Sequence record: ON529860.1
Reading direction: 5' to 3' (one strand)
DNA: 64,000 nt
Shown: piece by piece, positions 418-27,020 of the stretch
Position numbering within the stretch: the stretch's first letter is position 1
How the letters are laid out: each line of letters begins with the position of its first letter
Program-made: the position numbers and the translations under genes
The notes under the pieces: generated by a model
Databases searched by the model: none
The model's input: the letters and a program-made list of their open reading frames with translations, nothing else
Told to the model about the DNA's origin: nothing

Positions 418-545
418 CGCGGGTGGTCCCTTGCGGTGGTTTGTTCCCTTATACATAGGGGACAGAAGTTAACAAGAGGTTAAGACGCGAAAGTTTTTTG
501 GGCGGGGCAGGCGGGCGTTAACCTTAACGACGGGTTAATGGATCA

Positions 546-563
546 GCGGCCCCGAAGGGCCGC
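546..563 (-). terminator. GC hairpin with UUCG loop (example of the cassette terminators)
   Basis: GCGGCCC-TTCG-GGGCCGC just after stop at 569. Related hairpins recur near 10850,11720,14130,18620,20370,21900 (CGCCC(C)GGC-TTCG-GCCGG(G)GCG family) and 9355,16383,19227 (CCGGGTTGTCTCCCCCGG family). Confidence 0.7.
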
Positions 564-568
564 CCCTG

Positions 569-988
569 TCAGGCCGCGACCGGCTGGCGCAACAGGGTCC
601 ACAGGCGGTCCATCGCCTTGTTGACGACGTGGGGCGACCCGACGCCGAACGGCGTGACGTTGACCACGTCGGCGGACTTCCAGACATAGGCCCGGATCGT
701 CGCGACGCGGGGTCCGTGCGGCGGCTGTTCGGTGGTGACGAACAGGGTCACGCCCAAGCCGTGGAAGTCGTAGAAGCCGCCGGGGAACTTCGTGCCGAAG
801 CCCTTCATGGCGCCTTTGTCGAACCAATGGCCGCGACGGCGGCGGTCGTAATCGCGCTCGATGTTGGCGAGGCAATTGCTCGATCCCTCGAAGGCCGGGC
901 CTTCGTGCGGCGCGGGGGCGGCGGCGGCCAGCAAGCCCGGCAGGGCGGCGGCGGCGGCGAGGGCGATGCGTTCGGCTTGGGTGGTCAT
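569..988 (-). CDS. hypothetical protein, 139 aa
   Basis: ORF with GGAGA RBS, promoter at 1030, hairpin after stop. Confidence 0.8.
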   Translation of the reverse strand: MTTQAERIALAAAAALPGLLAAAAPAPHEGPAFEGSSNCLANIERDYDRRRRGHWFDKGAMKGFGTKFPGGFYDFHGLGVTLFVTTEQPPHGPRVATIRAYVWKSADVVNVTPFGVGSPHVVNKAMDRLWTLLRQPVAA

Positions 989-1135
989 GGTCGTCTCCGG
1001 TTTGATAGGTCCAACCTACAGGGGAGAAGTTAACAAAGCGTTAACGGCCGTCAAGGCCTTTCTGGCCGCGCGTTAAGGTTAACGGCGGGCGGGCGACAGG
1101 GATGCGCCCCGGCGCGAGGCCGGGGCGATCCTGGG

Positions 1136-1456
1136 TCAGCCGATCAGGCGCGTCTTGAGCGTCGCCCGGCCTTCCGGCGTCAGCTTGGCGCGTTGGGCGC
1201 GGAGGAAGTCAAGCCCCTTTTGATAGGAGTCGATCCTGCCGCCGTATTGGCGCTCCAACCACTTCAACGGCTCCGGGTAATGCGAGGCGTAGAAGGCCAC
1301 GCGACCCGGCCTGATGCGGGGGAACAGCTTGGCGCGGGCCTCTTTGATCGAGGTCGCGCCGGGGACGGGCAGTTCCGCGACCACGCGCCCCTTGCGGAGG
1401 ATATGGGCCGTGTTCAGTTCCGGCGCGTAGGCGTGGCGTTCGAGGATCAGTTTCAT
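1136..1456 (-). CDS. hypothetical protein, 106 aa
   Basis: RBS, promoter at 1499, hairpin after stop. Confidence 0.8.
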   Translation of the reverse strand: MKLILERHAYAPELNTAHILRKGRVVAELPVPGATSIKEARAKLFPRIRPGRVAFYASHYPEPLKWLERQYGGRIDSYQKGLDFLRAQRAKLTPEGRATLKTRLIG

Positions 1457-1509
1457 CGGTCGTCTCCGTTTCGATCCTTAGACCATAGGCGACAGAAGTT
1501 AACAAGAGG

Positions 1510-2151
1510 TTAAGAGGTGAAGTTTTCCAGATAGCGGCGGCGCATCCCCGCAACCGTCGTCGGCGTGACCCGGACAATGTCGGCGTTTTTGCGCATCATG
1601 TCCGCCCGCATGAACGACGTCGTCGCCAATTGCAGGGTGTGATTCACGCAGGAATGATAGCCGTCTTTCAGGCGTTCAATCGGCCACGTCGCCGGATGCA
1701 GCTTGGCGCGTTCCAAGGTCTCCAACGGGATAGGCACGGCGAGGTCGTCGCGATGCTGATCGGACTCCGTCCGCTCATAGGTCGCGCCGCGCGGATAGAC
1801 GCCCAAGATCAAATCCCCGTTGTTCAGCCGGAACCACGTCAGGCCGGAACGCCCGTCGTCGTCAACCGCTTGCGCCAGCACGTAGCGGGCCACGGCGGCG
1901 TCCGCCGGGACGGCCCACGCCACAACCGAATCGAGCATATTGCCGTCTTCGTCATGGGCGAAGATCGCGGACGGGGGGCCAGGTTCCTCCACGACGCCGG
2001 ACGGGTCTAGGCCATAGCGCCCTTCGAGCCAGACGGCGCGGGCCATGGTCAGGCCGTCGCGATAGGCGTCGCGTTCGGCCTCCGTCTCAAAGGGGCCGTG
2101 CAGGACGTTCGCCGGGCAACGCATGTAAAAGCCAACCGCTGAATCGGTCAT
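1510..2151 (-). CDS. hypothetical protein, 213 aa
   Basis: RBS, promoter at 2194; TAA stop lies inside the next CtrA box. Confidence 0.8.
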   Translation of the reverse strand: MTDSAVGFYMRCPANVLHGPFETEAERDAYRDGLTMARAVWLEGRYGLDPSGVVEEPGPPSAIFAHDEDGNMLDSVVAWAVPADAAVARYVLAQAVDDDGRSGLTWFRLNNGDLILGVYPRGATYERTESDQHRDDLAVPIPLETLERAKLHPATWPIERLKDGYHSCVNHTLQLATTSFMRADMMRKNADIVRVTPTTVAGMRRRYLENFTS

Positions 2152-2258
2152 CGGGGTCTCCCTTGATTGAGCCTCCTGTCTAGCACTGATTCGTTAACAA
2201 GAGGTTAACGTCGCGGAACGGACGGGCGTTAACCTTAACGGGCGGTAAGGGTAGAACG

Positions 2259-2489
2259 TCACCGGACAGGCCGGTAACGCTCCACGGGATAAGAGCCCGC
2301 TTTGGTGTAGATGGCGTAGGCGCCGTCGGCGTCGGGACCCAGGCAGGCAAAGGCGCCGCGCGAGGCATTGCGATTGCGCCGGTAGAACAGGGCGAGGAAT
2401 CCTGCGGGCGTTTTGGCTGCGGTCTCTTCAAGGTCCGGCAAGTCGCGGGAGCGACCATCCTCATAGTCGGTGACACTGTAGCGTTTCAA
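2259..2489 (-). CDS. hypothetical protein, about 76 aa (TTG start)
   Basis: GGAGG upstream of TTG, promoter at 2533. Confidence 0.65.
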   Translation of the reverse strand: MKRYSVTDYEDGRSRDLPDLEETAAKTPAGFLALFYRRNRNASRGAFACLGPDADGAYAIYTKAGSYPVERYRPVR

Positions 2490-2597
2490 GGGGCTTCCTC
2501 CATTGCTGCCCCATTCTTGTAGCACTGATTCGTTAACAAGAGGTTAACGCGTTTCGGCGGTGGGCGTTAACCTTAACGGGCGTTAGGAAAGCCAGGG

Positions 2598-3008
2598 TCA
2601 CAGGCCCCGGCAGGTGGGACCGAACCCGGACTCGATCGACACGGGATCGGTCAGGGGCAGGGCGCAGCGCCCGCAGCGGCCCTCATGATAGACCTTGAGG
2701 GCGGGCGGGATGCGCCCGGCGGCGAGGTGGGGCCACGCCCACGCGAAGGCGCGCGCGGACGGGGCGTCGGCGCCGATGGGGGCGCGGCGGCCATGCCGGA
2801 ACGAATCATCAGCGAAGATCGTGCCGAGGAAGGTGTAGTCGGCTTCGTTGTCCGCGCCGGTCAGGACCGACACGAACCAGACGCTATCCTTGGCGCCCAC
2901 GCGATAGGTGTAGCGGGCGCCGGTGGCCTCGCTGACCAGCGTGACGCGGGCGCGACCGGCGAGCATGAAGCGGCGGACGTTCTCGGCGGACATTTCAGCG
3001 GCGGACAT
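2598..3008 (-). CDS. DUF6011-like protein (C-terminal Cys motif)
   Basis: C-terminus CGRCALPLTDPVSIESGFGPTC resembles the DUF6011 signature. Confidence 0.7.
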   Translation of the reverse strand: MSAAEMSAENVRRFMLAGRARVTLVSEATGARYTYRVGAKDSVWFVSVLTGADNEADYTFLGTIFADDSFRHGRRAPIGADAPSARAFAWAWPHLAAGRIPPALKVYHEGRCGRCALPLTDPVSIESGFGPTCRGL

Positions 3009-3148
3009 GGGGTCGGCTCCGGGCGGGTGATCCTGTCACCCTAGAGCCGATTCGTTAACAAAAGGTTAAAGACAGATCGACGCCGGGACGCGTTAAGGTT
3101 AACGGCGGGCGGGCGCGGGAAGCCGCCCGGCGAACCGGGCGGCGGGGG

Positions 3149-3658
3149 TCACGGGGCCAGAGGATCGGGAGCCGGGATGATCTCGACGTGTCGCCTGCCC
3201 TGCTTGACGCGCCCGACCTTGATTCGCTTCTCGGCGGCGGCGCGCGCCCATTCGGTGCGCGTGGTCTCGGCGGCGTGGCGGCCCGTCTCATCAACGGCGC
3301 TATAGATGGAATAGAGCAGGCCGAACAACGCGACCTCCGGCATGGCCTTGATCGCCTCCAGCATTTCGCCGTTGTCATAGGCCCCGGACACTTCCACGAC
3401 GCGGGTGCCGGCGCCGTGGTGCATCAGGATATAGAAGGTCGATTTGCGGTCGCGGCGGCGCTCGCTTTCGCCGGTGCGGCGGACGGCCAGCTTGACGTCA
3501 TAGGCGCGGTAACAGACGCCGGTCCCCGGCTTGCCGTTGTCGCTTCCCAGGATGCGCATTTCGCGTTCCGGCAGGGGATGACGCAGGACCTCGAAGGGCT
3601 CGAAAGTCGTGTCGTCGGCGTAGCCCGATCCACGGGCGATGATGGCGCTTTTCAGCAT
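3149..3658 (-). CDS. hypothetical protein, 169 aa
   Basis: GGAGA RBS, hairpin after stop. Confidence 0.8.
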   Translation of the reverse strand: MLKSAIIARGSGYADDTTFEPFEVLRHPLPEREMRILGSDNGKPGTGVCYRAYDVKLAVRRTGESERRRDRKSTFYILMHHGAGTRVVEVSGAYDNGEMLEAIKAMPEVALFGLLYSIYSAVDETGRHAAETTRTEWARAAAEKRIKVGRVKQGRRHVEIIPAPDPLAP

Positions 3659-3712
3659 GAGGGGTCTCCGGTTGCGGGCCTGTTGAGAGACAGGCCCGGC
3701 GTGAATAGGGGC

Positions 3713-4150
3713 TTAACCCGTGATGTCTTCGGTGCGGTCGCGCAGGGCCTCGGCGTAGGTGTCGAAGGGCGCCGATTCGGCCTCTTGTTCTGCGTCATAC
3801 CAATGGAACCGCTTGACCGGGGCGGCGTCTTCCGTCGCGCCGGGGTAGGTGCGCTGAAAGACTTCCAAGTCGTCCAGATCGCCGTCTTCCGGGTCCAGTT
3901 GCAGGTTGAGGGGCGCGGGCGCCTCTGGAACCTTGCCGCTCGAATAGACGTCCACACAGACGCCCATGAAGGTCGCGATTTCGGTCGCCTGCGTCAGAAA
4001 CTGGCGTTGATACGAATCGGGCAGGGCTTGAGCCACGGCCACGGCGAAGGCGTCCGAGGCGAGGCACCAGACCAGTTCCGTAAAGGTCTCGACGCCGTCG
4101 TCCATGTCGGCGTAACCGATGACGGTGTAAAAGGCGGGGCGTTCAGCCAT
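3713..4150 (-). CDS. hypothetical acidic protein, 145 aa
   Basis: RBS, promoter at 4193. Confidence 0.8.
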   Translation of the reverse strand: MAERPAFYTVIGYADMDDGVETFTELVWCLASDAFAVAVAQALPDSYQRQFLTQATEIATFMGVCVDVYSSGKVPEAPAPLNLQLDPEDGDLDDLEVFQRTYPGATEDAAPVKRFHWYDAEQEAESAPFDTYAEALRDRTEDITG

Positions 4151-4340
4151 GGGGCTCTCCTGTTGCGTTGGGGATACCCTAGTCCGCAGAAGTTAACAAT
4201 AGGTTAAGATGCTGAAGATTTCCCGGCGGGCGGGGCGGGCGTTAACCTTAACGCGCCGTTAACCTTAACGGCGGACGGGCAGGGGCGGCCCCGGCCTAGA
4301 GCCGGGGCGCCGGGGCGGCGTCGTTCCGCCCCGTTCCCTG

Positions 4341-4538
4341 TCAGTCTTCGTCCGGGCGATAATCCGGGGCGGGATCGAAGCGACCGCAGAAGGTGCGGCC
4401 CTCCGATTCCATGCCGGGCTCAAAATCCCGGATGACGTAGAGCGCCCGGCCCACGGTGTTGAGGTTGAGCACCGCCACCGGGGCGCCCTTCCGGTTTGCG
4501 GTGCGTTGCGCGTCGCGCTTGACCTGATCGAGGCCCAT
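4341..4538 (-). CDS. hypothetical protein, 65 aa
   Basis: 3 nt after upstream stop; hairpin after stop. Confidence 0.7.
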   Translation of the reverse strand: MGLDQVKRDAQRTANRKGAPVAVLNLNTVGRALYVIRDFEPGMESEGRTFCGRFDPAPDYRPDED

Positions 4539-4541
4539 GGG

Positions 4542-4910
4542 TCAGCCCTCGTAACGGTCGTGAACCGAAACCGGGCCGCCGAAGCGGGGACCGCCGAGGC
4601 GTTCCACGGCTTCGTTGAAACGGCTGTCCGTCGTTCCGGCGTAGTTGCCGCCCGCCATCAGCCAGCGCGTGTCCATCTCGCCGGTGTCCGTCGCCGGGAC
4701 GATCTTGACCGCGCCGGGGACGTTGCCCTTGACCAGATAGGCGGCGGGGCGCGCCGGGTTGGGATCGAACGGGCCATCGACGTTGACCAAGGTCAGTTGC
4801 GCGACCTTGGACGACACGCCGCCGTTGGTGCAATCCACCGAGTCCAGCTTGATGATGTCGCCGGGGTGGTCGGCGGCGGCGCGGCGGTAGATGGAAACGA
4901 TCAGGCCCAT
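4542..4910 (-). CDS. conserved phage hypothetical protein (DCTNGGVS...GGNYAGTTDSRF motif)
   Basis: Motif pattern familiar from phage early-region proteins; AGGAG RBS; promoter at 4955. Confidence 0.75.
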   Translation of the reverse strand: MGLIVSIYRRAAADHPGDIIKLDSVDCTNGGVSSKVAQLTLVNVDGPFDPNPARPAAYLVKGNVPGAVKIVPATDTGEMDTRWLMAGGNYAGTTDSRFNEAVERLGGPRFGGPVSVHDRYEG

Positions 4911-4984
4911 GGGGCTCTCCTTTGTTTTGACCTTCACACCATAGCGCGAAGGTCTTAACAAGAGGTTAACGCCGGAAAGATTTT

Positions 4985-5152
4985 TCAGGCGGCGGAAAAC
5001 AGCGCGGCGGTCGAGACGCCGCCCAGCAGGGCGCGGCGGAACGGGTCGAGCGCGAGCGCCGGGGCGGCCTTGGCCTTGCGGGCGCGCGGCTTGGGGGCGG
5101 CCTTCGCGGCGGCGGGCTTGCGGGCGCGGGTCGTCTTCGGGGCGTCGGTCAT
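4985..5152 (-). CDS. 55-aa Lys/Ala-rich peptide ending in a Tat-signal-like segment
   Basis: Own degenerate promoter at 5209; basic N-part followed by FRRALLGGVSTAALFSAA. Confidence 0.65.
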   Translation of the reverse strand: MTDAPKTTRARKPAAAKAAPKPRARKAKAAPALALDPFRRALLGGVSTAALFSAA

Positions 5153-5310
5153 GGCGGGGCCTTTCAGCAGGGGTTGAAGTCCAGAGCCCCCAGCCTCGCA
5201 CTGATTCCTTACCAAAGGATTAACGGGCCAGGCCGCGCCGGGCGGGCGTTAACCTTAACGGCGCGGGCGGGACCGTTAACCACGGCGGAGGGGTCCGCCG
5301 TGGTCGTGGG

Positions 5311-5649
5311 TCACTTCACCCCGGCGATGATCGAGCAATCGCCGTAAAACTTGCCTTGGAACGGCAGGCAGTCGCCTTGCGGGGTGATGTGGTGCTCAAT
5401 CCAGAACCGGTCGTCGCCCTCGACCTTGGAGCCGTGCGCGTTGCTGTAGCCCTTGGCTTCCCACTCGGCGATGACTTCGGGGAAGGCGGCGCGGAAGGCC
5501 TCGCGCTCCATGGCGAACTTGAGTTCGCTCATGTAGGTGATCTGGATATAGCGGAAGGGGCCGATGGTCGGGCCTTCGAATCCCCAGTCTTCCATGTTTT
5601 GATCGGCGTCATCGCGGCCATGGAACAGGCGCAGGTGAACGTCGGACAT
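5311..5649 (-). CDS. hypothetical protein, 112 aa
   Basis: AGGAG RBS, promoter at 5694. Confidence 0.8.
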   Translation of the reverse strand: MSDVHLRLFHGRDDADQNMEDWGFEGPTIGPFRYIQITYMSELKFAMEREAFRAAFPEVIAEWEAKGYSNAHGSKVEGDDRFWIEHHITPQGDCLPFQGKFYGDCSIIAGVK

Positions 5650-5826
5650 TGGTCGTCTCCTCTTTCGATACAGACCACTATAGAGGCGATTCGTTAACAA
5701 GGGGTTAACGCCGGGACGATTTTTCGGGGGCGCGGGCGGGCGTTAACCTTAACAGCGCGTTAACCTTAACGACCGGTTTACGCCCCCGTTAACCATGGCG
5801 GGGGCGCCGCCATGGTCGGGGTCCGA

Positions 5827-6078
5827 TCAGGCCGCCGGGGGCGGCGGGATCGGGTGGCGCGCGGCGAGGCTCTTGGCGGTCCACGCGTCGGGGGTCGAGA
5901 GGTCGTAGGCCTCGGCGAACAGGCGGGCGCAGTCCTGCACCGTCTCGCCCGTCAGGTGGTCTTCATACCAGCTACGCAGTTGGTCTTCATCGGCCCCGGC
6001 GTCGCGGTAGTCGATGCCGTAGCCCGCCAGCAGGGCGGCGTTGGCGGCGGCGAGCCAGAGTTCAAACGTGGGATACAT
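5827..6078 (-). CDS. hypothetical protein, 83 aa
   Basis: RBS, promoter at 6125. Confidence 0.75.
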   Translation of the reverse strand: MYPTFELWLAAANAALLAGYGIDYRDAGADEDQLRSWYEDHLTGETVQDCARLFAEAYDLSTPDAWTAKSLAARHPIPPPPAA

Positions 6079-6266
6079 CGGGCGTCTCTCCTTGTTCCGA
6101 TGCTTAGACCATATCCGGCAGAAGTTAACAAGAGGTTAAGACCGGAAAGATTTTTCAGGGGTCGTCCGGGGCGGCGTTAACCTTAACAGGCCTTAAGGTT
6201 TTGTTAAGGTTAACGGGCGGGGCCTGGAAATGGTTAACGGCCGTTAACCACTCCCCTTAACCGTCC

Positions 6267-6551
6267 CTAGTTGGGACGGTCGTCGACGAACTCGATTTTC
6301 TGTTCCGTCGTGGCGATCAGGGCCGTGACGTCGGCGATGGCGTCGTCCAGTTTGGCGGCGCCCTTGTAGGTCTTGCCGGTCCAGCCGCCGACCATCGCCA
6401 GCAGGTTCTTGGCGGTGTAGGCCCGGTTGACCTTCATGCCGATCTTGAGGGCGCGCAGGCCTTGGCGAACAACGATCATCTGGTAGCGGGTGATGGCCGC
6501 GCCGGTGTGGGTGACGGCGCCGTGTTCGGAGATGTGGACTAGATCGGTCAT
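6267..6551 (-). CDS. hypothetical protein, 94 aa
   Basis: Promoter at 6596, plausible composition. Confidence 0.75.
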   Translation of the reverse strand: MTDLVHISEHGAVTHTGAAITRYQMIVVRQGLRALKIGMKVNRAYTAKNLLAMVGGWTGKTYKGAAKLDDAIADVTALIATTEQKIEFVDDRPN

Positions 6552-6747
6552 GTCTGTGTTCCCTTGTTGGTGAGATCACTATAGCGACCCAGTTCTTAAC
6601 AACAAGTTAAAATCGAAATAGATCGTGCTTAACGGGAATGGTTAATTTTTCGGGGCTGGGCGTTAACCTTAACAAGAGGTTAACGGCTGTTAAGGTTAAC
6701 GCCGGAGGGTCAGGCGAGACCGCCCCGGCGAACCGGGGCGGCGGGGA

Positions 6748-7371
6748 TCAGCCCAGTTGAATCGTGCCGTCGTCGGCGGTGTAGAGATAGACTTCTTCGG
6801 GGTATTTTTGCGCGGCTTCCGTCAGGGCCTCGCCCTCCGCTTCGGGCCAGTCGCCGTCTTCCCAGAACCCGACGCCGTTACGGGTCCGGGTCATGTAGAA
6901 GTCATATCCGGCCTGCTCTTGCACCGAACAATTGACCGCGCGGACCTCGCCCGACGCATAGGCCGCTTCCAAGGTGGCGGCGTTCTCGCGTTGGAAGCGT
7001 TCGCAGTCCGCGACCATTTCGCGCAAGCCGTCCGGGTGAATCTCTTCCGGGCAAATGGTGTTGTCACGGTCCGAATCGGCGGCGGGGTGTCCGGTCGGAT
7101 ACTCGGCGCCGTTCGAGGCGGCGGCGCCGATGTAGCCCCGCGTGAACGGATCGCACGGCGTCAGGACGGCCCAGGCATCGGCTTCATAGGCGGCGCGCGC
7201 CTTGGCGTTGGCCTCTTCGAGGGCGTCCACAACCGCGCGGGCTTCCGCGACCAGAGCGGCGGGTTCGGTGTGCGGAAATTGCATCACCGTCAGGGCGGCG
7301 ATCTGTTGCGCCGTCAGGGGGCTGTAGTCGGGGACCGTGGTTTCGGCGGTCAGCTTGGCGAGGGTCGTCAT
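6748..7371 (-). CDS. conserved phage hypothetical protein (AGYDFYMTRxRNGVGFW motif)
   Basis: Resembles the common phage motif GHDFWLTRNGHGAGFWD; promoter at 7416. Confidence 0.75.
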   Translation of the reverse strand: MTTLAKLTAETTVPDYSPLTAQQIAALTVMQFPHTEPAALVAEARAVVDALEEANAKARAAYEADAWAVLTPCDPFTRGYIGAAASNGAEYPTGHPAADSDRDNTICPEEIHPDGLREMVADCERFQRENAATLEAAYASGEVRAVNCSVQEQAGYDFYMTRTRNGVGFWEDGDWPEAEGEALTEAAQKYPEEVYLYTADDGTIQLG

Positions 7372-7738
7372 GGGGTTGCTCCCGTTGATGTGCGGGCATA
7401 TTGCACGCCAAGGTCTTAACAACAAGTTAACGCCGCGTAGATTTTTCAGGGCGGGCGGTCGTTAAGGTTAATGCGAAAGACTCGCACAGGGCGGCGTTAA
7501 CCTTAACGGAATCGTCCGAAAAATTAACCATGCCCGTTGACGCTTTCTTAACGACTCGGCGCTAGGCTCAAGGGTTCCATAGCCACGCCTCGCGCCGGGT
7601 CCGACCCCCCGCGCGCGGTGTCACGCGCTCGCCTCATCCGGGGCGGGGCGCCCGGCCACGCGCCCCGACATCAGGAGGCGCGAGCCCGCCCGGCTGGGCG
7701 GTCGATCGGTCATGCCGGCGACCGCCAGGGCGGGGGTG

Positions 7739-7918
7739 CGTCGAATCGAAACGGCGTCAGGTCAAGTCGGCCGGCGTCGAAACGAAACGGCGTCAGGTCA
7801 AGTGCGTGCGCGTCGAATCGAAATGGCGTCAAGTCAAGTTCGCTTGCGTCAAATCGAAATGGCGTCAGGTCAAGTGCGCTTGCATCAAATCGAAACGGCG
7901 TCAGGTCAAGTGCGCGGG
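7739..7918. repeat. 5 x 36-bp tandem repeat (CGTCRAATCGAAAYGGCGTCARGTCAAGT...)
   Basis: Units start at 7739,7775,7811,7847,7883; no spacers. Confidence 0.95.
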
Positions 7919-8214: not shown

Positions 8215-8226
8215 GGGGTTTCGGTT

Positions 8227-16967: not shown

Positions 16968-16969
16968 GG

Positions 16970-19264: not shown

Positions 19265-19825
19265 TCAGACGTCGAAGTCGCCGTATTGCGTCCCGCACTG
19301 GACGATTTCGCCGGTGGCGTCATCCCAGTGGATGCGGTTCAGGCGCAGCTTGTTGCCGGTGCGGGCGTGGGTCCATTCCACCTGACAGGTGATCATGTCG
19401 TCGAAGATCGCCGAGGGCTCGCCGTATTGCGACCAGTCCACGCCGCCCCGGTCGTCAACCTGCTGCTTGGCGTCGGACAGGATGCGGGCCAGCACCTCGG
19501 GCATCAGGCGGCCGGGCGCCTTCTTGAGGCCGTAGGCGCCGCGTCCGTTGTTCGCCATATTGCTGAAGTTGCTGAAGTCCTGCGTGTAGTTCTCGACCTC
19601 GACCGACCCCGGCTGGGGCAGGTCATACATGAGGTCCGACAGCATGTCGCCGACCGTATAGGTCTCGGTGGCGGCGTCCAGCTTGTCGGCCAATTCGGCG
19701 CCCTCGTCGCCCGGCTGGACATAGAGTTCGGCGCCGTCAGCGCGGCGCGCCAGGACGCCGCCCATCGAATCACGCCACGCCTTGAACGCGCCGTCATCGC
19801 TTTCCCAGGTGGGGGCCTTGCTCAT
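19265..19825 (-). CDS. hypothetical protein, 186 aa
   Basis: ATGA coupling, GAGGAGG RBS. Confidence 0.8.
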   Translation of the reverse strand: MSKAPTWESDDGAFKAWRDSMGGVLARRADGAELYVQPGDEGAELADKLDAATETYTVGDMLSDLMYDLPQPGSVEVENYTQDFSNFSNMANNGRGAYGLKKAPGRLMPEVLARILSDAKQQVDDRGGVDWSQYGEPSAIFDDMITCQVEWTHARTGNKLRLNRIHWDDATGEIVQCGTQYGDFDV

Positions 19826-20238
19826 GCCTCGGCCTCCTCTTCGACTTCGGCATAGGCGCTGGGGATGCGCTTGTTCGTGTGGTCGCAGAACAGATCAGGG
19901 TCCTCATAGTTGATCTGGACGCTGTCGAGGCGCCAGCCGGTCGAGGCGTCGTGCAGGTGGTCGTCACAGACCAGCGTGAAGTTCGCCTGCACCGCGTCGA
20001 ACGACAGGGCGACGCCGTCGCGGGTGGCGAAATAGAGCGGATAGCCGCCGAGGTCCGTGTAAGGCCCGGCGCGCAGCGCGGCCTTGACCTGCTGAAGCGC
20101 CTTGACCGGATCGGCGTCGAAGCGGGCGGCCGAACCCTTATAGGCGGCGCGCAGCGGCTTGGCGGTTCCCCAGCCGGGCTGGCGGGTGTCGTAGAGGGCG
20201 CCATCGGACGAGGCGAAAAGGTGGGCGGGCAATGTCAT
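19822..20238 (-). CDS. conserved phage hypothetical protein, 138 aa (GGYPLYF...DLFCDHT motif)
   Basis: RBS, promoter at 20284. Confidence 0.8.
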   Translation of the reverse strand: MTLPAHLFASSDGALYDTRQPGWGTAKPLRAAYKGSAARFDADPVKALQQVKAALRAGPYTDLGGYPLYFATRDGVALSFDAVQANFTLVCDDHLHDASTGWRLDSVQINYEDPDLFCDHTNKRIPSAYAEVEEEAEA

Positions 20239-20401
20239 GGGGTCTCCTCCCGTTGCTGACCCTCCCTGTATCGCATGAAGTTCTTAACAACAAGTTAACG
20301 CCGCGTTTTATTTCCGGCGGCGGGCGTTAACCTTAACGCGCTGTTAAGGTTAACGCGAGCCGGTCGCAGGAAAACGCCCGGCCGAAGCCGGGCGCTTGTG
20401 T

Positions 20402-20812
20402 TCAGCCCTCGCCCGCTTCCCAGAGCGCGACGCCGCAGCCGTAGCCCAGGGCGTAGGCCGCGTAACGGGCCGTGCCGGATTCGTATTTCGGTCGGCCGAA
20501 CCAGTCGTTATGTCGCGCCATGTCTTTAGGCGCGGCATGGGAGGCGTCCCGCCCTTCACCGAAAATCATCGCCAGCAGGTAATAGTCGTCGTCGGGGGTC
20601 GTCGCGCAGGCGGCGACGATCAGGTCGTAGAACTTGCGGGACAGACCTTTCATCAGGGGGAACTCAGGGATCAGCGCGACGGTGGTCGTGCGGTAGCGGG
20701 TGTGACCCTGGTCCCAGCGGTAGGCCTCGGCCGATCCGCTTTCGTAGGGGTTGTCCCACCAGTTGACGCCTGCACGGGCGGCGGCGAGGCCTTCGCGCCA
20801 GATCGGGTCCAT
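20402..20812 (-). CDS. hypothetical protein, 136 aa
   Basis: Coupled ORF, hairpin after stop. Confidence 0.75.
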   Translation of the reverse strand: MDPIWREGLAAARAGVNWWDNPYESGSAEAYRWDQGHTRYRTTTVALIPEFPLMKGLSRKFYDLIVAACATTPDDDYYLLAMIFGEGRDASHAAPKDMARHNDWFGRPKYESGTARYAAYALGYGCGVALWEAGEG

Positions 20813-21057
20813 CAGGCGCCGATCCGGTGGGCCGGGCAGAAGCCCGTCACGACCTTGACGCGACCGCGCTTGAAGCCGGGGCGCAGGGCGCGCGCCGAGC
20901 GTTCGGCGTCGGCGGTCTTCATGTGACCGCAGGCGCAGGACGCGCCGGGGTCGCGGGTCTGGGCCTCGCGCACCTTGTCGGCGCCGGCCTGTGTGCCGAG
21001 CCAGCCGCAGAAGGGCTCGCCGCCGACCGTGATGTGAGCGGGTTGGGTGTTCGTCAT
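20812..21057 (-). CDS. hypothetical Cys-containing protein, 81 aa
   Basis: AGGAGG RBS. Confidence 0.7.
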   Translation of the reverse strand: MTNTQPAHITVGGEPFCGWLGTQAGADKVREAQTRDPGASCACGHMKTADAERSARALRPGFKRGRVKVVTGFCPAHRIGA

Positions 21058-21066
21058 CGGGGCCTC

Positions 21067-21264
21067 CTATAGGTTCAGGGCGGCGTCGAACGCCTGGGAT
21101 TGCAGTTTCTTGGCGGCTTCGGCCTCGGCGGGGTAGAGCCGGGCCAGGCCGTCAAAGCGTTCTTTCTGATGCGAGCGCTCGCCCTCGGCGGCGGTCATAT
21201 GCATGACCTCGCCCCACAGGTGGGCCATTTCGAGGATCAGGACAGAGCGGCGGGAAGCGTTCAT
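21067..21264 (-). CDS. hypothetical protein, 65 aa
   Basis: AAGGAG RBS, promoter at 21306. Confidence 0.7.
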   Translation of the reverse strand: MNASRRSVLILEMAHLWGEVMHMTAAEGERSHQKERFDGLARLYPAEAEAAKKLQSQAFDAALNL

Positions 21265-21316
21265 GGCGGTCTCCTTGTTGACCTCGCCACCCTAGCAGAG
21301 AGGTCTTAACAAGAGG

Positions 21317-21793
21317 TTAACAGCGGCGAAGCATTTCGCGCATCAGGGCTTCCTCGTTGCGGGCGATGTCCAGCGCGGCGCGGTCGTGGCCTTGCTCATG
21401 CGCCTGCTTGGCCTGCTGTCGGCAGATGTCCTGGCGCTTGCGGATGTCGGCCTCCGACAGGGTGCGGAACAGGGCGTCGGCCTCCTGATCGACCTTGACG
21501 GTCCAGTGCTGCTGCGATTCGTCGTCGGCGCGGAGATGGGCGGGGAAGTAGAGGTCCGCCACGTCCTGTGCGAAGAACGACCCGTCGTTGCCGATCTTGA
21601 GCAGTTCGGCCTCGACCTCGACCGGCGCGATCTCTTCGGCGGCGACGACCGTATAGGCGCCGATCCCGTCGCCGTCGGTGATGAAGTGGGCGATGTCCGC
21701 CAGCGTCATGTCCGCGACCAGCCGCTCGGCGGCGGCGGTGTCGGCGGCGTGATACACGACCAGGGAGAGTGTCGTCTTGATGATCTTGGGCAT
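21317..21793 (-). CDS. hypothetical protein, 158 aa
   Basis: AAGGAG RBS, promoter at 21835; stop inside CtrA box. Confidence 0.8.
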   Translation of the reverse strand: MPKIIKTTLSLVVYHAADTAAAERLVADMTLADIAHFITDGDGIGAYTVVAAEEIAPVEVEAELLKIGNDGSFFAQDVADLYFPAHLRADDESQQHWTVKVDQEADALFRTLSEADIRKRQDICRQQAKQAHEQGHDRAALDIARNEEALMREMLRRC

Positions 21794-21927
21794 GGGGTCT
21801 CCTTTGCGACTGATCCTGTTCTAGCAGTGATTCGTTAACAAGAGGTTAACGCGGCGCGCGGTAGTCCGGGGCGTTAACCTTAACAGGGTCAGGCCGGAAA
21901 ACGCCCCGGCCGAAGCCGGGGCGCGGT

Positions 21928-22818
21928 TCAGCCGATCCGCTCCTTCTTGAGGTGGTAGGACCGTCCGTGGGTCATCAGGGTGCGGAACCCGCCCAACCGG
22001 GTCTCGCCCGGCGCTGGGCTGACGACATAGACCGGATCAAGGAAGTCGTCGTTCCAGCGGATCACGTCGTCGAACGACTGGGGCGTATGCAGCACGACCT
22101 TATAGGGTTCGCCCTCGGGCGCGACCAGATCGGTGGTGTGGTCCTCGTCGCCCCTGTAACCGAACACCGACAGGACCGCGACCGGCAGGCCGTCGTCAAG
22201 CGTCGTGAGGTCTTGCAGGGCGCGGGCCTCGGCCAGCCGCTGATGCGGTTCATAGAGGGCGCAGTCGCGCTTGAGCAGATCGGCGCGCAAGGCGACGACG
22301 CGCTGGGGCGTCAGGTCCAGAGCCGCGCAGGCCCCGATGACGACGCCGTAGATGAAGCCGAGTTCGTGCTGCGTGAGTGACACCATGCCGTCCATTCCCG
22401 CCGTCGCGACCTCCTGATTTTTCAGGCCGAACGCCGCCAGGGCGCCGGCGACGTCGCGGCACTCCTGCCGGGTCGGGGCGGTCTTGGACTCGATGTGAAG
22501 GCGCAGGGTTTCGCGGGCCTTCATCAGGTCCACAATCGCCAGCGACAGGCCGGTGTAGCGGCCGTCTTCGACCGGGGCGGGCTTGGGCTTCGGGGCCGGG
22601 TAGGTCTCGACGCACAGCAGGCGGGCGCGGGTTTCCTCGACCGTATAGACCTCGACCTGATAGGTCATGCCAAGCGCCGCGCGTAGTTCGTTGCGGATCG
22701 CCAGACCGGCTTCGGGGTCGGTGGTGGTCAGGCGCAGTTCGCCGATCCGGCGGTCCTCGCCCTTGGCGGGGTGGCGGCGCGACAGTTCAAGGCGCAGGTC
22801 GTAGGGGGCGTCTGTCAT
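21928..22818 (-). CDS. hypothetical protein, 296 aa
   Basis: RBS, promoter at 22861. Confidence 0.8.
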   Translation of the reverse strand: MTDAPYDLRLELSRRHPAKGEDRRIGELRLTTTDPEAGLAIRNELRAALGMTYQVEVYTVEETRARLLCVETYPAPKPKPAPVEDGRYTGLSLAIVDLMKARETLRLHIESKTAPTRQECRDVAGALAAFGLKNQEVATAGMDGMVSLTQHELGFIYGVVIGACAALDLTPQRVVALRADLLKRDCALYEPHQRLAEARALQDLTTLDDGLPVAVLSVFGYRGDEDHTTDLVAPEGEPYKVVLHTPQSFDDVIRWNDDFLDPVYVVSPAPGETRLGGFRTLMTHGRSYHLKKERIG

Positions 22819-22871
22819 CGGTGTCTCCCGTGGTTGAGCGTCTGGTGTAGCCGAGATTCGTTAACAAGAGG

Positions 22872-23063
22872 TTAACGCGGCGTGTTTTTCTCGATCCAGG
22901 TTTCGGCGGCGCGGCGCGTCTGGCGCATGGCGGCGAAGGTGTGGCGCACCTTCCCGTCCGGTCCCGGCGGCGGCACGAACTCGCCCGCGCTGACGATGGC
23001 GTAGTAGGGGCCGTGACCGGAGAAGAAGTCGTAGTATTCGACGACGCGGTGCGGGGGTTCCAT
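22872..23063 (-). CDS. hypothetical protein, 63 aa
   Basis: AAGGAGG RBS; stop inside CtrA box. Confidence 0.7.
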   Translation of the reverse strand: MEPPHRVVEYYDFFSGHGPYYAIVSAGEFVPPPGPDGKVRHTFAAMRQTRRAAETWIEKNTPR

Positions 23064-23098
23064 CGGGCCTCCTTGGCAGGGGTTGTGTCGGGCTGGGC

Positions 23099-23458
23099 TC
23101 AGCTTAGGCGGGCGAGGATTTCGTCGTTCGTCATGGTGTCCATCAGGGCCTGGACCCGCTGGGCCTTTTCATCCTCGACCGCCTGGGCCGCCGTCTTGGC
23201 GCGGCGATGCTCGGCCAGCGCCGCCTTGCCGGCCTCGGTGGTCTCCGGGTCGATGGTCATGTAAAGGCTGACCTCGCGGCCCTGACGGTCCACGAAGGTC
23301 AGGCTTCCAGACGGCCGCACCTTGACGGTGAAGTGATGCTTGACCAGACGCTCGGCGGTCTCCTGACCGAAGTCGCCGCCGAAGCAGCCGCCCGCCGCCT
23401 TGACGGTGTTGTCGCTCTTGAGCCGGGTGTGATAGCCGATGTTCTTATGGGCGTGCAT
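23099..23458 (-). CDS. hypothetical protein, 119 aa
   Basis: AAGGAG RBS before MHAHKNIG. Confidence 0.75.
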   Translation of the reverse strand: MHAHKNIGYHTRLKSDNTVKAAGGCFGGDFGQETAERLVKHHFTVKVRPSGSLTFVDRQGREVSLYMTIDPETTEAGKAALAEHRRAKTAAQAVEDEKAQRVQALMDTMTNDEILARLS

Positions 23459-23468
23459 GGGGCGCTCC

Positions 23469-23807
23469 TTAGAAGGGAATGTCGTCGTCGAACGACGGGG
23501 GCGGGGCGTAGGTCTGGGCGGCGCGCGCGCGGCGGGCGGCGTCCATCTCGGCGCGCTCCTCGTCCGTCGCGCTCCAATACTCGTCGTCTTCCGGGTGGGC
23601 GCCGGGCTCGCCGCGATAGTGCGGGTTCTTGACCCACGCATCCAGCGGATGCAGCAGCCATTCCTGATCCGGGACCTCGCGGCCTTCCGTGTGCGCGAAG
23701 CCCGACACGGCCAGGCTCATGTATTCGCCCTGGCTCAGCGACTCCATCGCCAGAGCGTCTTCCTTTTCGCGGCGGGCCTCTTCGGCCATTTCGATCACAT
23801 CGCGCAT
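23469..23807 (-). CDS. hypothetical acidic protein, 112 aa
   Basis: AAGGAG RBS, promoter at 23849. Confidence 0.75.
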   Translation of the reverse strand: MRDVIEMAEEARREKEDALAMESLSQGEYMSLAVSGFAHTEGREVPDQEWLLHPLDAWVKNPHYRGEPGAHPEDDEYWSATDEERAEMDAARRARAAQTYAPPPSFDDDIPF

Positions 23808-23983
23808 CGGCGTCTCTCCTTGTGAGCCCCCTTTATGCCAGACAGAAGTTAACAACAAGTTAACGCCGACGCTTTTCTGCATTTTCTTCGGGCGGCGGCT
23901 GCGGGCGTTAACCTTAACGGCGTGTTAAGGTTAACGGTCGGGGTCCAGCCTGGGAAACGGCGTCCCGGAACGGGACGCCTCTC

Positions 23984-24052
23984 CTAGAAGGTGAGCAGGA
24001 TGACCAGCAGGGCCAGAAAGAGGCGGGAGGCGCCGGCCAGCTTGTCGATCAA
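23984..24052 (-). CDS. small single-TM peptide, 22 aa (MIDKLAGASRLFLALLVILLTF)
   Basis: TTG overlaps upstream TGA; hairpin follows. Confidence 0.5.
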   Translation of the reverse strand: MIDKLAGASRLFLALLVILLTF

Positions 24053-24519
24053 GTCGCGTTGTCCGCCTTCATCGCCGCGCACAGGGTCTCGACCAGCCGC
24101 TTGTGGCGCGCCAGAGCGGCGGGGTCCGTGCGGTCGCCTTGGAAGGGGACCAGCACCAGAGGTGTGGCCGAGGGGTCCAGCGCCCAGAAGATTTCCGTCT
24201 CGCCGTCCGTCATCTGGTAGGTGAAGACGTTCAGGTCGGCTGGGGCGTGGTCGAGGAAATAGACGCGTCCGTTGAACCGGGCGTTGAAGGGCTGTTCCGG
24301 CGTCGCCAAGTCGATCTCAGCCAGCACGGCGTCGCGCACGGCGTCAATCGGGTGGACGCCGTCTTCGCTGGTTTCATCAGGACGGGATTCGGCCTCGGCC
24401 TCCGCGTCGCGCTTGATGTCCTCGACCACGGCGGCGCGCGCCTCCTCCCAAGTCGCGCTGGCGCTGGGCTCCTCGTCGGGCATGAAGCCCGAGACGTTCG
24501 ATCCGGTCACATAAGGCAT
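24049..24519 (-). CDS. hypothetical protein, 156 aa
   Basis: RBS, promoter at 24567. Confidence 0.75.
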   Translation of the reverse strand: MPYVTGSNVSGFMPDEEPSASATWEEARAAVVEDIKRDAEAEAESRPDETSEDGVHPIDAVRDAVLAEIDLATPEQPFNARFNGRVYFLDHAPADLNVFTYQMTDGETEIFWALDPSATPLVLVPFQGDRTDPAALARHKRLVETLCAAMKADNAT

Positions 24520-24671
24520 CGGGGTCTCCCTTGTTGATGCGAGGCTGCAATCTACCCGACGAGGTCTTAACAAAAAGTTAACAGCGACGCAATCGCTTTT
24601 CTTCGCGGCGTTAACCTCTTGTTAACTTCTTCGTGGGATAAGGGACAGGTCAACAACACAGGAGATCGCCG

Positions 24672-24917
24672 ATGGGCGAAGTCATCCCGCACCGCGTCTG
24701 GCGCAACACCCGGACCGAACGCACCGCTGGCGTGTTCGGCGCCGTGCCTTGGGTCTCGGACGCGGAGAAGCATGAATGGGAACTGGTCACGGTCGGCTGG
24801 ACCGTCCGCCACCCGGACGGCACGACCGGGGTCGGCCGCTTCGCCTTCCAGACGAAGGACGAGGCGCAGGCTTGGGTCGATAAGAATCCCAACTTCCCCG
24901 GCATGAGCCAAGGCTAG
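24672..24917 (+). CDS. hypothetical protein, 81 aa
   Basis: AGGAG RBS; inverted copy of the CtrA promoter at 24611; hairpin after stop. Confidence 0.8.
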   Translation: MGEVIPHRVWRNTRTERTAGVFGAVPWVSDAEKHEWELVTVGWTVRHPDGTTGVGRFAFQTKDEAQAWVDKNPNFPGMSQG

Positions 24918-25167
24918 TCACAGGGGCGTCGGTCGCAAGGCCGGCGCCCTTCGTTGTTGCGACCCGCTCGCGTTAACCTTAACAGAGCGTTAACCTTAAT
25001 GCCCCTGCCCGCTCTAGGGGTATGACCGGGTATGACCAGGTCATACCGGGGCGGATTCCCGCTGAAAATCACCCGAATTTGCCGAATTGCGCTCGAAATC
25101 GCCGGATTTTGACCCTAAATCACTGTTTTTACTAGATTTTTCGGGTTTTCTGGCGGTCCAGAGGCCG

Positions 25168-25320
25168 TTAACCTTAACGGGGCGTTAACCTTAACGCGGT
25201 TTTGGTTAACGGGGCATTAACCTTAACGCCTGGATGGTTAACGAGGCGTTAACCTTAACGCGGTGATGGTTAACGGGCCGTTTACCTTGACGGCGGGAGG
25301 GTTAACGGCCCCAGGGTTAA
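25168..25320. repeat. dense TTAA half-site array, 32-bp period (TTAA-N7-TTAA-N2-TTAA-N11)
   Basis: N7 pairs start at 25174,25206,25238,25270. Confidence 0.9.
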
Positions 25321-25329
25321 TCGGGGCGG

Positions 25330-25533
25330 CGTCAAATCGCGCTCCCGTCAAATTCGGCCGGCGTCAAATCGAAACGGCGTCAAGTCAAATCTGTCGCGTT
25401 GAAGCGCGCTCGCGTCAAATCGGCCGATCGTCAAATCGCGCTCGCGTCAAATCCAGATCGCGTCAAATTCGCGGGGCGTCAAATCGCGCTCCCGTCAAAT
25501 CGATCGCGCGTCAAATCGGCGAGGCGTCAAGTC
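25330..25533. repeat. 16-bp-period CGTCAAAT array (about 13 units)
   Basis: GTCAA(A/G)T at 25331,25347,25363,25379 then 25414,25430,25446,25462,25478,25494,25510,25526; includes one copy of the 36-bp unit from 7.7 kb. Confidence 0.95.
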
Positions 25534-25766
25534 GACCGGGCGGCCTGAAGCGGGCCGGCGTCCAGTCGGGCTGCCAGGGCGCGCCCGAGCGGGCTTGCGC
25601 GGCGCTCCGCCTCCCAGGGAGGACACCTGGAAGAAACGGCCTGAAGCGCGCCCTGGCGCCTCTTTCTAACCTGAGCCGGGGCAGGGTCAAGCCGAACAGG
25701 GTCGAGAAGGCCGTTTTCCGGGCCGTGGAGCGCCCTGGCGCGGGCGGGGCGACCGCAGGGCCGCTG

Positions 25767-26216
25767 GAGTCACGAAACCCATCCACGGGCCGGAAAACCA
25801 GCCAGGACGGGCGATTGTCAGTCACGATACCCACCATCTGTGACTCTGCCGGGATTTTTGTCAGTCACGAAACCCGGAGGCGGGCTTCGCCGGCGATCCT
25901 GGCGCCCAGGCGGATCAGTGTCAGCGGTTGTGTCAATGCGGGACACAATAAGGCGGGATTAGGGCGAAATGGGATTTCAGGGCGGAGTCACGTTTGCCGA
26001 AACGGGCGCTCGGGACTTCTGTTGATTTCATTGAGGTTTTTCGCCGGAGCCGGGCGTTTTGGAGTCACGATTGCCGTTGTGCGGTGCAGCAATGCGCCGG
26101 ATTTGAGCGGGTCCAGGCGGGGCGAAACAGAGTCACGTTTTCCTAAGCTGTTGGGTTCATTACGCTTTTTAGGGTGGGCCAGCACCTGAGTCACGTTTGA
26201 CACGAACGATGACTCC
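25767..26216. repeat. GAGTCACGWWWNCC motif cluster
   Basis: Copies near 25767,25820,25863,25985,26062,26130,26188; two form N14 palindromes. Confidence 0.85.
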
Positions 26217-26295
26217 GTCAGCCGAGGCGCAAAAACAGGCAAAATCACAGTAAAATCAGTGATTTAGGGGCGTTTTTCGGGATTTAGGGGTGAAA

Positions 26296-26478
26296 TTAGC
26301 GGCGATTCCGGTGAAATCGGTCGATGGCGGTGTCGTGAGGGGCTTGCCGCCCGTCAAAACGCCCTGCACGCTCCCGATGACGCCGTTTGCGCTCCCAGGG
26401 ACCGGGCCAGATGATCTGGACGGTCCAGACCAGCAGCAGGAGGAACACAAAGGCCCCCATGACGATCGCTACCCACAT
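26296..26478 (-). CDS. small membrane protein, 60 aa
   Basis: GGAGAG RBS; N-terminal TM helix, basic tail. Confidence 0.55.
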   Translation of the reverse strand: MWVAIVMGAFVFLLLLVWTVQIIWPGPWERKRRHRERAGRFDGRQAPHDTAIDRFHRNRR

Positions 26479-26509
26479 CGCGCGCTCTCCGTGACCTGGT
26501 GAATGACCA

Positions 26510-26714
26510 GGGTCCCCGCCGGATGAATCTGGAGGGTCCCCCGACCGAAAATTCGCCAGGGTCCCTGGACGAAAAATTCCAAAGGGTCCCCGGCCGTTAA
26601 TTCAGCAGGGTCCCCCGGTCGAAAAATCCCGAGGGGTCCCCGCGTTGAATTCGCCAGGGTCCCTGGGCGATGAATCCAGACGGGTCCCCGGTCCAGAAAA
26701 TCCGGAAGGGTCCC
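26510..26714. repeat. 9 x about 25-bp AATT/AATC...AGGGTCCC array
   Basis: GGGTCCC at 26510,26534,26559,26584,26608,26634,26657,26682,26708. Confidence 0.95.
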
Positions 26715-27020
26715 CGCAGGCTATCACGGTCGGGCCGGCGCCGCCATGGGCGCGCGGCGTTAACCTTAATGGCGCGTTAACCATGCCTGTTAAGGTTAAC
26801 GCGGGGCCGGCCGCCGTTAACCCTCTGATCGTTAAGGTTAATGCCGCCGGGTGGCTGGCGCGAGATCGTTGACAGGGGACTCAGTTGGTCTGTCGCACTT
26901 ATGACACAGTCCGAGGGCGCCGTTGTCTGTCAACAAATCGCGTCTGGAATGCGCTTCCAGCGGAGCCCCGATTTTGAACCCTCTCCTATTCTTTCATGGA
27001 TCATATCCCAACATCCAAAG

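Follow-up and report, generated by a model that had tools for sequence, protein, structure and literature searches.

The TTAA-rich early region of phage Papperlapapp

The DNA analysed here, a stretch of 64,000 nucleotides to which we refer as the window, corresponds with 100% identity to positions 62001-126000 of record ON529860.1, the genome of Brevundimonas phage vB_BpoS-Papperlapapp, a 357-kb jumbo phage of the Dolichocephalovirinae (the phiCbK-like phages) with B. pondensis as its host. The element in question is a pair of TTAA half-sites separated by GG or CC (hereafter the N2 block, or doublet), which recurs beside the early promoters of this phage and in a gene-poor leader next to terL, the large terminase gene, and whose half-sites are of the type bound by the host response regulator CtrA. 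The annotated genes between 118 and 24519 are all on the minus strand, so the early region is read from right to left; its right flank is the end of the large terminase gene (27076-29799, minus).

The first 27.1 kb of the window contain 171 TTAA tetramers against an expected 25 (6.8-fold over-representation), while in the other 37 kb the tetramer is under-represented (16 observed, 33 expected). Leftward of the window the TTAA-rich block continues for about 10 kb, to approximately 51.8 kb of the record, adding 19 TTAA-N7-TTAA (N7) sites and 11 N2 blocks, so that the whole block covers some 37 kb from just past the portal and peptidase genes up to the terminase gene and holds 67 perfect full sites and 51 doublets. 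In the 114 kb of the record that were scanned, all 67 N7 sites fall between approximately 51.8 and 88.8 kb, nearly all of them intergenic; such a concentration of predicted CtrA sites in one, mostly intergenic, segment (a terminal repeat or gap region) is what distinguishes the low-positional-entropy (LPEG) phages of Mascolo et al.

Within the window there are exactly 48 perfect N7 sites, all at 469-26780, compared with none in 100 dinucleotide shuffles, and the hand count of about 48 in the original prediction was thus accurate. The 12-mer GTTAACCTTAAC occurs 34 times, 33 of these at 517-26800, with none expected by chance. The excess of TTAA blocks beside early promoters and in the leader is confirmed.

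Blocks occupy a fixed place between terminator and promoter

Thirty-three of the 48 N7 sites belong to a stereotyped early promoter. Read in minus orientation they fit gcgTTAAC(C/T)T(C/G)TTGTTAA(C/G), followed after about 9-10 nt by gCTAnnn, then by a ribosome-binding site and a start codon that lies 41-52 nt from the box. These promoters (469-24625; consensus gcgTTAACCTCTTGTTAAC ahead of the same spacer and gCTAnnn) comprise 32 on the minus strand and one on the plus strand (24611-24625). The sigma-73 consensus of Caulobacter is TTGACGS-N10-14-GCTANAWC; TTGTTAA followed by GCTAnnnn matches it, and the CtrA box therefore overlaps the -35 element, as it does at CtrA-activated host promoters. 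A TTAA-N7-TTAA over the -35 is also the position typical of CtrA-dependent class II promoters, and all 33 boxes (TTAACCTCTTGTTAAC) have it. The remaining 15 N7 sites are precisely those that had been picked out by eye as extra pairs created by extension of the N2 blocks.

Forty TTAA-(GG/CC)-TTAA blocks are present in the window: 30 in promoter intergenic regions (517-23935, either orientation, CGTTAA(GG/CC)TTAACGC), nine in the leader and one in coding sequence (33042). The last, a single perfect GTTAACCTTAACG block at 33042-33051, sits in the late operon where two small open reading frames (ORFs) overlap, and is the only one outside the early and leader regions. The blocks had been described as not tied to genes, a claim that fails for the 30 that stand at a fixed place between terminator and promoter and leaves only the nine in the leader; full sites behave likewise, with 43 of 48 forming parts of promoter regions. 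They had also been placed upstream of promoters, which is correct when the DNA is read in minus orientation, the direction of genes 118-24519, and incorrect otherwise.

Among intergenic regions with a promoter box, 22 of the 23 that are at least 107 bp long carry one or two blocks, compared with none of nine short ones (52-74 bp). In the single long region that has no block, upstream of the gene at 24049-24519, the box of the divergent promoter lies 30 nt upstream instead. The first block begins 11-20 nt past a terminator hairpin and T-run (median 14.5, standard deviation 2.6, n=16), where terminators were called by our own hairpin-plus-T-run measure; a generic promoter and terminator scan (consensus E. 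coli, strict T-run) gave nothing above shuffles. From the CtrA box the nearest block is 28-54 nt away, a looser spacing than that to the terminator, and an A-rich stretch separates the two. Helical phasing between block and box is not strict (Rayleigh p 0.06-0.11, 28 promoters) and was dropped as an argument. Ten of the 30 promoter blocks make an additional N7 pair with a neighbouring TTAA or with a second block. The order of the promoter unit is hence terminator, block or blocks, A-rich stretch, CtrA box with -35, -10, gene.

About half of the early promoters, at 2194-22875, fall into spacer classes, which read TTGTTAAC-GAATC..., TTGTTAAC-TTCTG... and TTGTTAAG-ACCT.... The TTGTTAAC-GAATC class has a GANTC site (CcrM methylation; complement YGATTCG) immediately past the -35, and as phiCbK-like phages encode a GcrA homologue, an input of methylation and GcrA on this one class is conceivable. 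Farther along the window, an AT-richer stretch at 33960-34300 holds several similar units (e.g. ...TTAAACGTATCCCAAAATGGTAATAGAGAGTATAGGGG...) that may represent another promoter class or small RNA genes.

Sequence, register and conservation of the doublet

A logo of the 51 blocks gives the consensus CGTTAAGGTTAACGC, beyond whose 15 bp the information drops sharply. It consists of CtrA-type half-sites 6 bp apart, GTTAACC overlapping TTAAC, and the promoter box opens with the same 8 nt, GTTAACCT, as this consensus. The original prediction saw an excess of possible CtrA sites in the blocks, and their non-random, CtrA-type character is borne out by this shared half-site with its flanks (CGTTAAC) and by the preference for an N7 or two-turn register. 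The centre is invariably GG or CC in Papperlapapp, and now and then CG in other phages; promoter blocks use both orientations (GG:CC 20:8). In Colossus-type genomes and in phiCbK the first TTAA is often TTAG (GTTAGGGTTAAC), so the best-conserved core is GGTTAAC(GC), with a second TTAA-like element 6 bp off. This core equals the extended CtrA/SciP half-site GTTAACC.

Canonical CtrA sites have two TTAAs 11 bp apart (N7, occasionally N6) that one dimer reads, a spacing that a lone N2 block lacks; a block becomes part of a canonical site only with a neighbouring TTAA at N7, as in 15 sites of the window. With its half-sites 6 bp apart, the lone block is therefore filed here as a CtrA-type half-site doublet and kept apart from the canonical boxes. 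If one moves outward from a TTAA of a block, the next one follows at 11 bp in 22 cases and at 21 bp in 12, compared with two cases each for 10 and 13 bp. This register is the canonical CtrA spacing or two helical turns, and keeps the half-sites on one face of the helix.

Comparison with phage Bambus (89% identity over the region) indicates what is retained. All 36 evaluable blocks are unchanged; identity is 97% in the block 14-mers, 87.9% in the remaining intergenic DNA and 89.4% in coding sequence. The promoter boxes have kept every TTAA half (100%), with 92.6% conservation of their N7 spacers. Within the 32-bp array of the leader (see below) substitutions are confined to the spacers, and two half-sites, degenerate in Papperlapapp, have a perfect counterpart in Bambus. 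Purifying selection acts on the blocks.

A conserved terminal leader beside the terminase gene

Downstream of terL lies a gene-poor leader of 2.1 kb (24920-27075) with at least five repeat families. Its inner edge, towards the early genes, is marked by a pair of N2 blocks in N7 register (24972-24999), just past which there is a palindrome, GGTATGACC.../...GGTCATACC (25019-25047). A TTAA array, cluster 2, follows at 25166-25320, with the unit TTAA-N7-TTAA-N2-TTAA-N11 repeated 4.2 times at a period of 32 bp; the array had been noticed by eye with the same unit, and Tandem Repeats Finder recovers it at 25174-25308 (4.2 copies, 82% matches). Read on the minus strand its units end in GTTAACCAT or GTTAACCA. 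Abutting it are about 12 iterons of GCGTCAAATCG with a 16-bp period (25319-25542), the counterpart of a TTTGACG array in phiCbK, Bajun and Gurke, and then seven dispersed GAGTCACG / CAGTCACG repeats (25770-26200), some of which hold GANTC. A small minus-strand ORF of 60 aa with one hydrophobic helix (26296-26478) occupies the position of phiCbK gp001. It is succeeded by nine copies of GGGTCCCC at a period of about 25 bp (26480-26720), an array that is conserved beside terL in all relatives examined, and by TTAA cluster 1 (26755-26845), which consists of three N2 blocks plus GTTAACCAT and is the cluster closest to terL. An annotated plus-strand ORF at 25266-26189 (a 308-aa hypothetical protein) spans the TTAA, CGTCAAAT and GAGTCACG arrays; since its repetitive translation is that of the repeats, it is probably spurious.

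The two TTAA clusters are inverted copies of a unit of about 30-32 nt, 81-86% complementary (25203-25276 and 26755-26845) and 1.5 kb apart. A nested inverted repeat of 21 nt lies at 25113-25133 and 26249-26269 (95% complementary, about 1.1 kb apart), so that the iteron core of the leader is bracketed by nested long-range inverted repeats, which could permit looping or bridging by a protein that binds the TTAA unit.

The repeat order downstream of terL is common to Papperlapapp, phiCbK, CcrPW, CcrSC, Bajun and Gurke, and is partly kept in Colossus. It runs from a TTAA cluster through a GGGACCC array (about 24-25 bp), the small membrane ORF and CGTGACT/GAGTCACG repeats to TTTGACG(C) 16-bp iterons, a TTAAGGTTAACGC array, a GGTATGACC / ATACCCGGTA palindrome and the first early promoters. 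The 32-bp regularity is found only in the Papperlapapp/Bambus group, and the homologous arrays of phiCbK, Bajun, Gurke and CcrSC are irregular; recent tandem duplication therefore explains the period as well, and a spacing of three helical turns does not hold up as a general design principle.

In phiCbK the physical left end of the genome lies in terL codon 652, where the 10.3-kb terminal repeat begins (Gill 2012, PMC3556154). This codon aligns with residue 651 of Papperlapapp TerL, at about 27849 of the window. By homology, the left end of Papperlapapp is predicted near 27849, and the DNA leftward of it in the window would be the start of the terminal-repeat and early region. The 907-aa terminase itself aligns end to end with intein-containing terminases of phiCbK-like phages, and its translation contains a junction-like ...VVHNS.

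Searches of the leader detected no Rfam families and no DnaA boxes with up to one mismatch. The lowest GC content is 0.46-0.49 per 100 nt, and there is no strong AT-rich unwinding element; the arrays are flanked by these lowest-GC islands. The combination of initiator boxes and an AT-rich unwinding element beside CtrA sites, by which a Cori-like origin would be recognised, is thus absent from the leader. As far as we found, the parts of Gill 2012 and Mascolo 2022 considered here do not describe this conserved terminal leader.

Distribution of the doublet in other phages and in host chromosomes

Doublets are present in the homologous leader, within the direct terminal repeat (DTR), of phiCbK, CcrPW, CcrSC, Bajun and Gurke, and in the form GTTAGGGTTAAC in Colossus. 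Blastn searches with the array matched alphaproteobacterial phages only, weak chance hits aside. The matches include the Delta-like Brevundimonas phages Delta, Fanboy, Leszy, BabaJaga and Poludnitsa, treated as an independent lineage by Mascolo et al. (PMC9437464), as well as the Erythrobacter phages XM05 and L02 and the Sphingobium phage Lacusarx. In the non-coding gap or leader regions of these phages doublets are interleaved with N7 pairs and GTTAACCAT, and all named hosts of doublet-bearing phages are Alphaproteobacteria.

A 14-mer scan of IMG/VR added at least about 10 viral contigs with multiple blocks; among the matches listed, contigs of 53-59% GC have 12-22 doublets per 10 kb. One uncultured phage lineage (L101, L073 and L087, 53-56% GC) carries doublets and almost no perfect N7 CtrA boxes. 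Every early promoter in L101 and L073 consists, at rigid spacing, of a terminator, GGTAACC-N5-GTTAA(GG/CC)TTAAC, N17, GTTAACCAT, GTGGAAAAAGTGC and TTGACC.

Genome contigs were scanned for two doublets within 6-36 nt. Among the matches listed, most are (TTAACC)n or (GGTTAA)n microsatellites in metagenome-assembled genomes (MAGs) of diverse bacteria, together with AT-rich Bacteroidota. The matches listed also include paired doublets that have no N7 partners upstream of chromosomal genes in two GC-rich alphaproteobacterial MAGs (L131 720-763 and L150 7159-7399), which hints that hosts use the doublet too. One of these MAGs belongs to the Rhodobacteraceae, and there the doublets precede a gene for a small membrane protein.

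Relation to known CtrA systems

The closest described system is that of Mascolo 2022 (PMC9437464), with clusters of CtrA sites in the terminal repeats and gap regions of alphaproteobacterial phages that rely on pili or flagella ('lytic deferment'). phiCbK-like phages are reported there to concentrate CtrA sites in their terminal repeats, and phosphorylated CtrA (CtrA~P) binds and activates phiCbK gp005 and gp018, whose promoters have the same type of box as those of Papperlapapp. In phage Delta, CtrA~P shifts an 81-bp probe upstream of DELTA_120, described as having 'three sites and two half-sites', and represses that gene. We located DELTA_120 (68 aa) at 97-303 of L009, and the 81 bp upstream of it read TTAAggTTAA-N7-TTAAccTTAA-N7-TTAA...TTAAcgTTAA-N7-TTAA; three doublets in N7 register thus made up the DNA that CtrA~P shifted in that study. 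It shows that CtrA~P binds the grammar of doublets and N7 spacing, a result that does not extend to the doublet alone. In the Delta gap region 30 TTAAs were counted, of which 12 form N7 sites, so an excess of half-sites had already been seen there.

Papperlapapp resembles the phages of that study in belonging to the phiCbK-like subfamily, in a DTR/early region of small genes that have no assigned function, and in its TTAA-N7-TTAA promoter boxes. The two accounts differ in what was scored: Mascolo et al. recorded full N7 sites and called the remainder 'half-sites', and in the passages considered here the 6-bp doublet does not appear as a discrete 15-bp motif. Likewise, neither its position after terminators, nor its presence in the homologous leader of each Dolichocephalovirinae genus that was checked, nor the inverted bracketing clusters are described, and Papperlapapp is not in their data set. 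Our literature search for the motif string gave no relevant paper.

The nearest functional precedent for a promoter with both block and box is Caulobacter pilA, where the driving CtrA site lies at the -35 and sites of higher affinity are found 31 bp upstream (Rijal, Johnson and Curtis 2024, PMC11264516). With the latter in place, pilA is expressed later, at a lower level and in a manner sensitive to CtrA dose; their spacing matters too (PMC11264516). As in Papperlapapp, a CtrA site overlapping the -35 is accompanied by further sites upstream; unlike the 6-bp doublets, those of pilA are degenerate N6 full sites with a net effect of repression or delay, and in Papperlapapp the architecture is repeated at more than 20 promoters.

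At Cori, the host origin, a non-coding control region holds a cluster of several CtrA sites, to which CtrA~P binds cooperatively. The Papperlapapp leader likewise has clustered CtrA-type sites in non-coding DNA, but where Cori has five separate full sites the phage array consists of doublet-plus-N7 triples, and DnaA boxes were not found in the leader.

A third comparison concerns SciP, for which chromatin immunoprecipitation (ChIP) gave the motif (G/A)TTAACCAT(A/G) (Fumeaux et al. 2014, PMC4083442). The doublet shares GTTAACC with it and matches nine of 10 positions, and exact GTTAACCAT occurs in the arrays; in related IMG/VR phages, among the matches listed, GTTAACCAT stands at a fixed N17 from the doublet. 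The difference is at position 8, which is mismatched in the doublet (GTTAACC(T)TAAC).

A proposed role for the doublets, and alternatives to it

From its sequence and distribution, the doublet is best read as a conserved cis-element of alphaproteobacterial phages that use CtrA. The explanation we favour, and in which we have moderate confidence, is that the doublets are accessory CtrA-type sites that tune the CtrA~P threshold and the timing of early promoters and build a multi-site platform in the leader. Upstream doublets, at roughly -65 to -100, would supply extra binding capacity for CtrA~P, and this may determine both the CtrA~P requirement of the promoter and its time of firing, much like the upstream sites of host pilA. 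Some 1-2.5 kb from the predicted genome end, the inverted clusters that bracket the leader would form a CtrA~P platform, which might sense that same state of the host on the part of the genome that enters a swarmer cell first. That CtrA occupies the doublet itself, and that such occupancy tunes promoters, is what we infer. In favour of this explanation are the half-site and flanks shared with the promoter boxes, the 11- and 21-bp registers, the tight placement in long promoter regions, the purifying selection, the spread among phages whose named hosts are Alphaproteobacteria, the shift of the Delta probe, the CtrA activation of phiCbK gp005 and gp018, the pilA precedent and the negative Pfam search for DNA-binding domains in 45 early or leader ORFs. 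The original prediction had offered two interpretations, a raised local CtrA occupancy on a cooperative platform and a CtrA sponge. It is supported in part: the sites are of CtrA type, and the platform is plausible and matches the pilA precedent (PMC11264516).

Several observations weigh against this explanation. The published shift concerns doublets in N7 register and not the doublet alone, and at a distance of 6 bp the two half-sites face nearly opposite sides of the helix, so that a single CtrA dimer could not contact both. Block and box, 28-54 nt apart, are not strictly phased (Rayleigh p 0.06-0.11), the spacing between block and terminator (11-20 nt) is the tighter of the two, and a near-invariant central GG or CC is not required if only TTAA is read. 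Furthermore, doublets outnumber N7 boxes by 12 to 0 in L093 and by 17 to 1 in L101; lineages with many doublets and few or no N7 boxes imply that the doublet can work without a canonical CtrA site.

These points lead to the question of whether another protein reads TTAA-SS-TTAA. In the main rival explanation the doublet would be the operator of the host HTH protein SciP (acting with or against CtrA), of another alphaproteobacterial factor or of an unrecognised early protein of the phage, possibilities that together we consider somewhat doubtful; such a reader could bind the leader arrays and silence or insulate the early transcription units. The symmetric flanks (CG...CG) and use of both orientations, the strict GG/CC centre, the constant distance to the terminator and the near-match to the SciP ChIP motif with its exact copies in the arrays would all suit it, as would the lineages with doublets, almost no N7 boxes and a fixed N17 to TTAACCAT, and the paired chromosomal doublets in two MAGs that have no N7 sites. 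On the other hand, the strong 11-bp register with neighbouring TTAAs is a CtrA signature, and for SciP sites in particular Mascolo et al. saw no positional signal in these phages (PMC9437464). As to a phage protein, Pfam and PHROGs scans of 45 early and leader ORFs found no DNA-binding domain or family, and the candidate that we considered, a small divergent ORF of 81 aa beside the array, was rejected as it is absent from phiCbK and the Delta-like phages; the occurrence of the motif across phage lineages and host orders disfavours a phage-specific reader. Slightly more doubtful still is a broader view in which the doublet would be a recognition element itself. Its reader would be CtrA in a non-canonical mode, as monomers or as two dimers contacting opposite faces, or else a TTAA-reading factor not yet described. 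The doublet and the other conserved iteron families might then make up a terminal nucleoprotein control region, common to phiCbK-like, Delta-like and Sphingomonadales phages; by looping or bracketing the leader, its two inverted clusters would link the host cell cycle to the entry, replication or packaging of phage DNA. A related and, we think, unlikely possibility makes the leader primary: its arrays would place a terminal control region, be it an origin, a packaging site or a checkpoint of DNA entry, under CtrA, with CtrA~P silencing or licensing it much as it silences Cori. Phage DNA metabolism would thereby be coupled to the swarmer-to-stalked transition, and the promoter blocks would be a secondary spread of the unit. 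The five repeat families that keep their order across genera, the bracketing of iteron arrays by inverted TTAA clusters 1.5 kb apart, the low-GC islands flanking the arrays and the distance of about 1-2.5 kb to the homology-predicted terminus are consistent with this, and the gap regions of Delta and Fanboy hold the same arrays beside iterons and a very AT-rich stretch. Against it, the leader has no DnaA boxes, no strong AT-rich unwinding element (minimum GC 0.46-0.49 per 100 nt) and no identified initiator gene, and three quarters of the blocks are at promoters, outside the leader.

The sponge, in which the excess sites would serve to draw CtrA~P off its host targets as soon as phage DNA is replicating, appears quite improbable. 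It is arithmetically possible with 67 full sites and 51 doublets per early block, since replication multiplies the copies and the block is perhaps duplicated in the terminal repeat; CtrA-activated host genes number roughly 100, so phage sites are of the same order. A decoy would consist of sites in excess of promoters and separable from them, whereas promoter regions account for 30 of 40 blocks and for 43 of 48 full sites, with only nine blocks and five full sites gene-free. Any titration would therefore come mainly from the promoters themselves, and the sponge finds no specific support. A sponge would have no use for the fixed place that the blocks hold in the promoter architecture, and this placement points to action in cis. 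As the early promoters of the phage would themselves rely on CtrA, its depletion would act against them; titration could be a side effect and not a selected function. Least probable are passive repeats at cassette boundaries, left by duplication or recombination among small early-gene cassettes and devoid of binding function. Their location exactly at the junction of a terminator and the next promoter, the variable gene content of this region among relatives and the resemblance of the 32-bp regularity to recent tandem duplication would fit such an origin. It is contradicted by the selection pattern: all 36 blocks are unchanged although flanking intergenic DNA has diverged by about 12%, and constraint falls on TTAA positions, not on spacers. 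The preferred 11- and 21-bp registers and the recurrence of the same 10-15-mer in unrelated phage lineages are likewise unexpected for passive repeats.

Significance

The doublet arrangement looks like a variant of the CtrA strategy already described for phages, not like a free-standing sponge. phiCbK-like phages are standard tools of Caulobacter cell-cycle research, and their use of CtrA was established in 2022. With copies at more than 20 promoters and in the leader, the discrete and strongly conserved accessory motif offers a handle that can be mutated and transplanted; it permits a direct test of whether these phages have copied the promoter logic of the pilA type (swarmer/G1), and of whether early genes are timed by the dose of CtrA. 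The multi-iteron leader at the first-entering DNA is an unexplored candidate control region of jumbo phages. Should CtrA prove to bind the doublet in a novel manner, or should the doublet have a different binding partner, this would bear on host promoters with 'orphan' half-sites.

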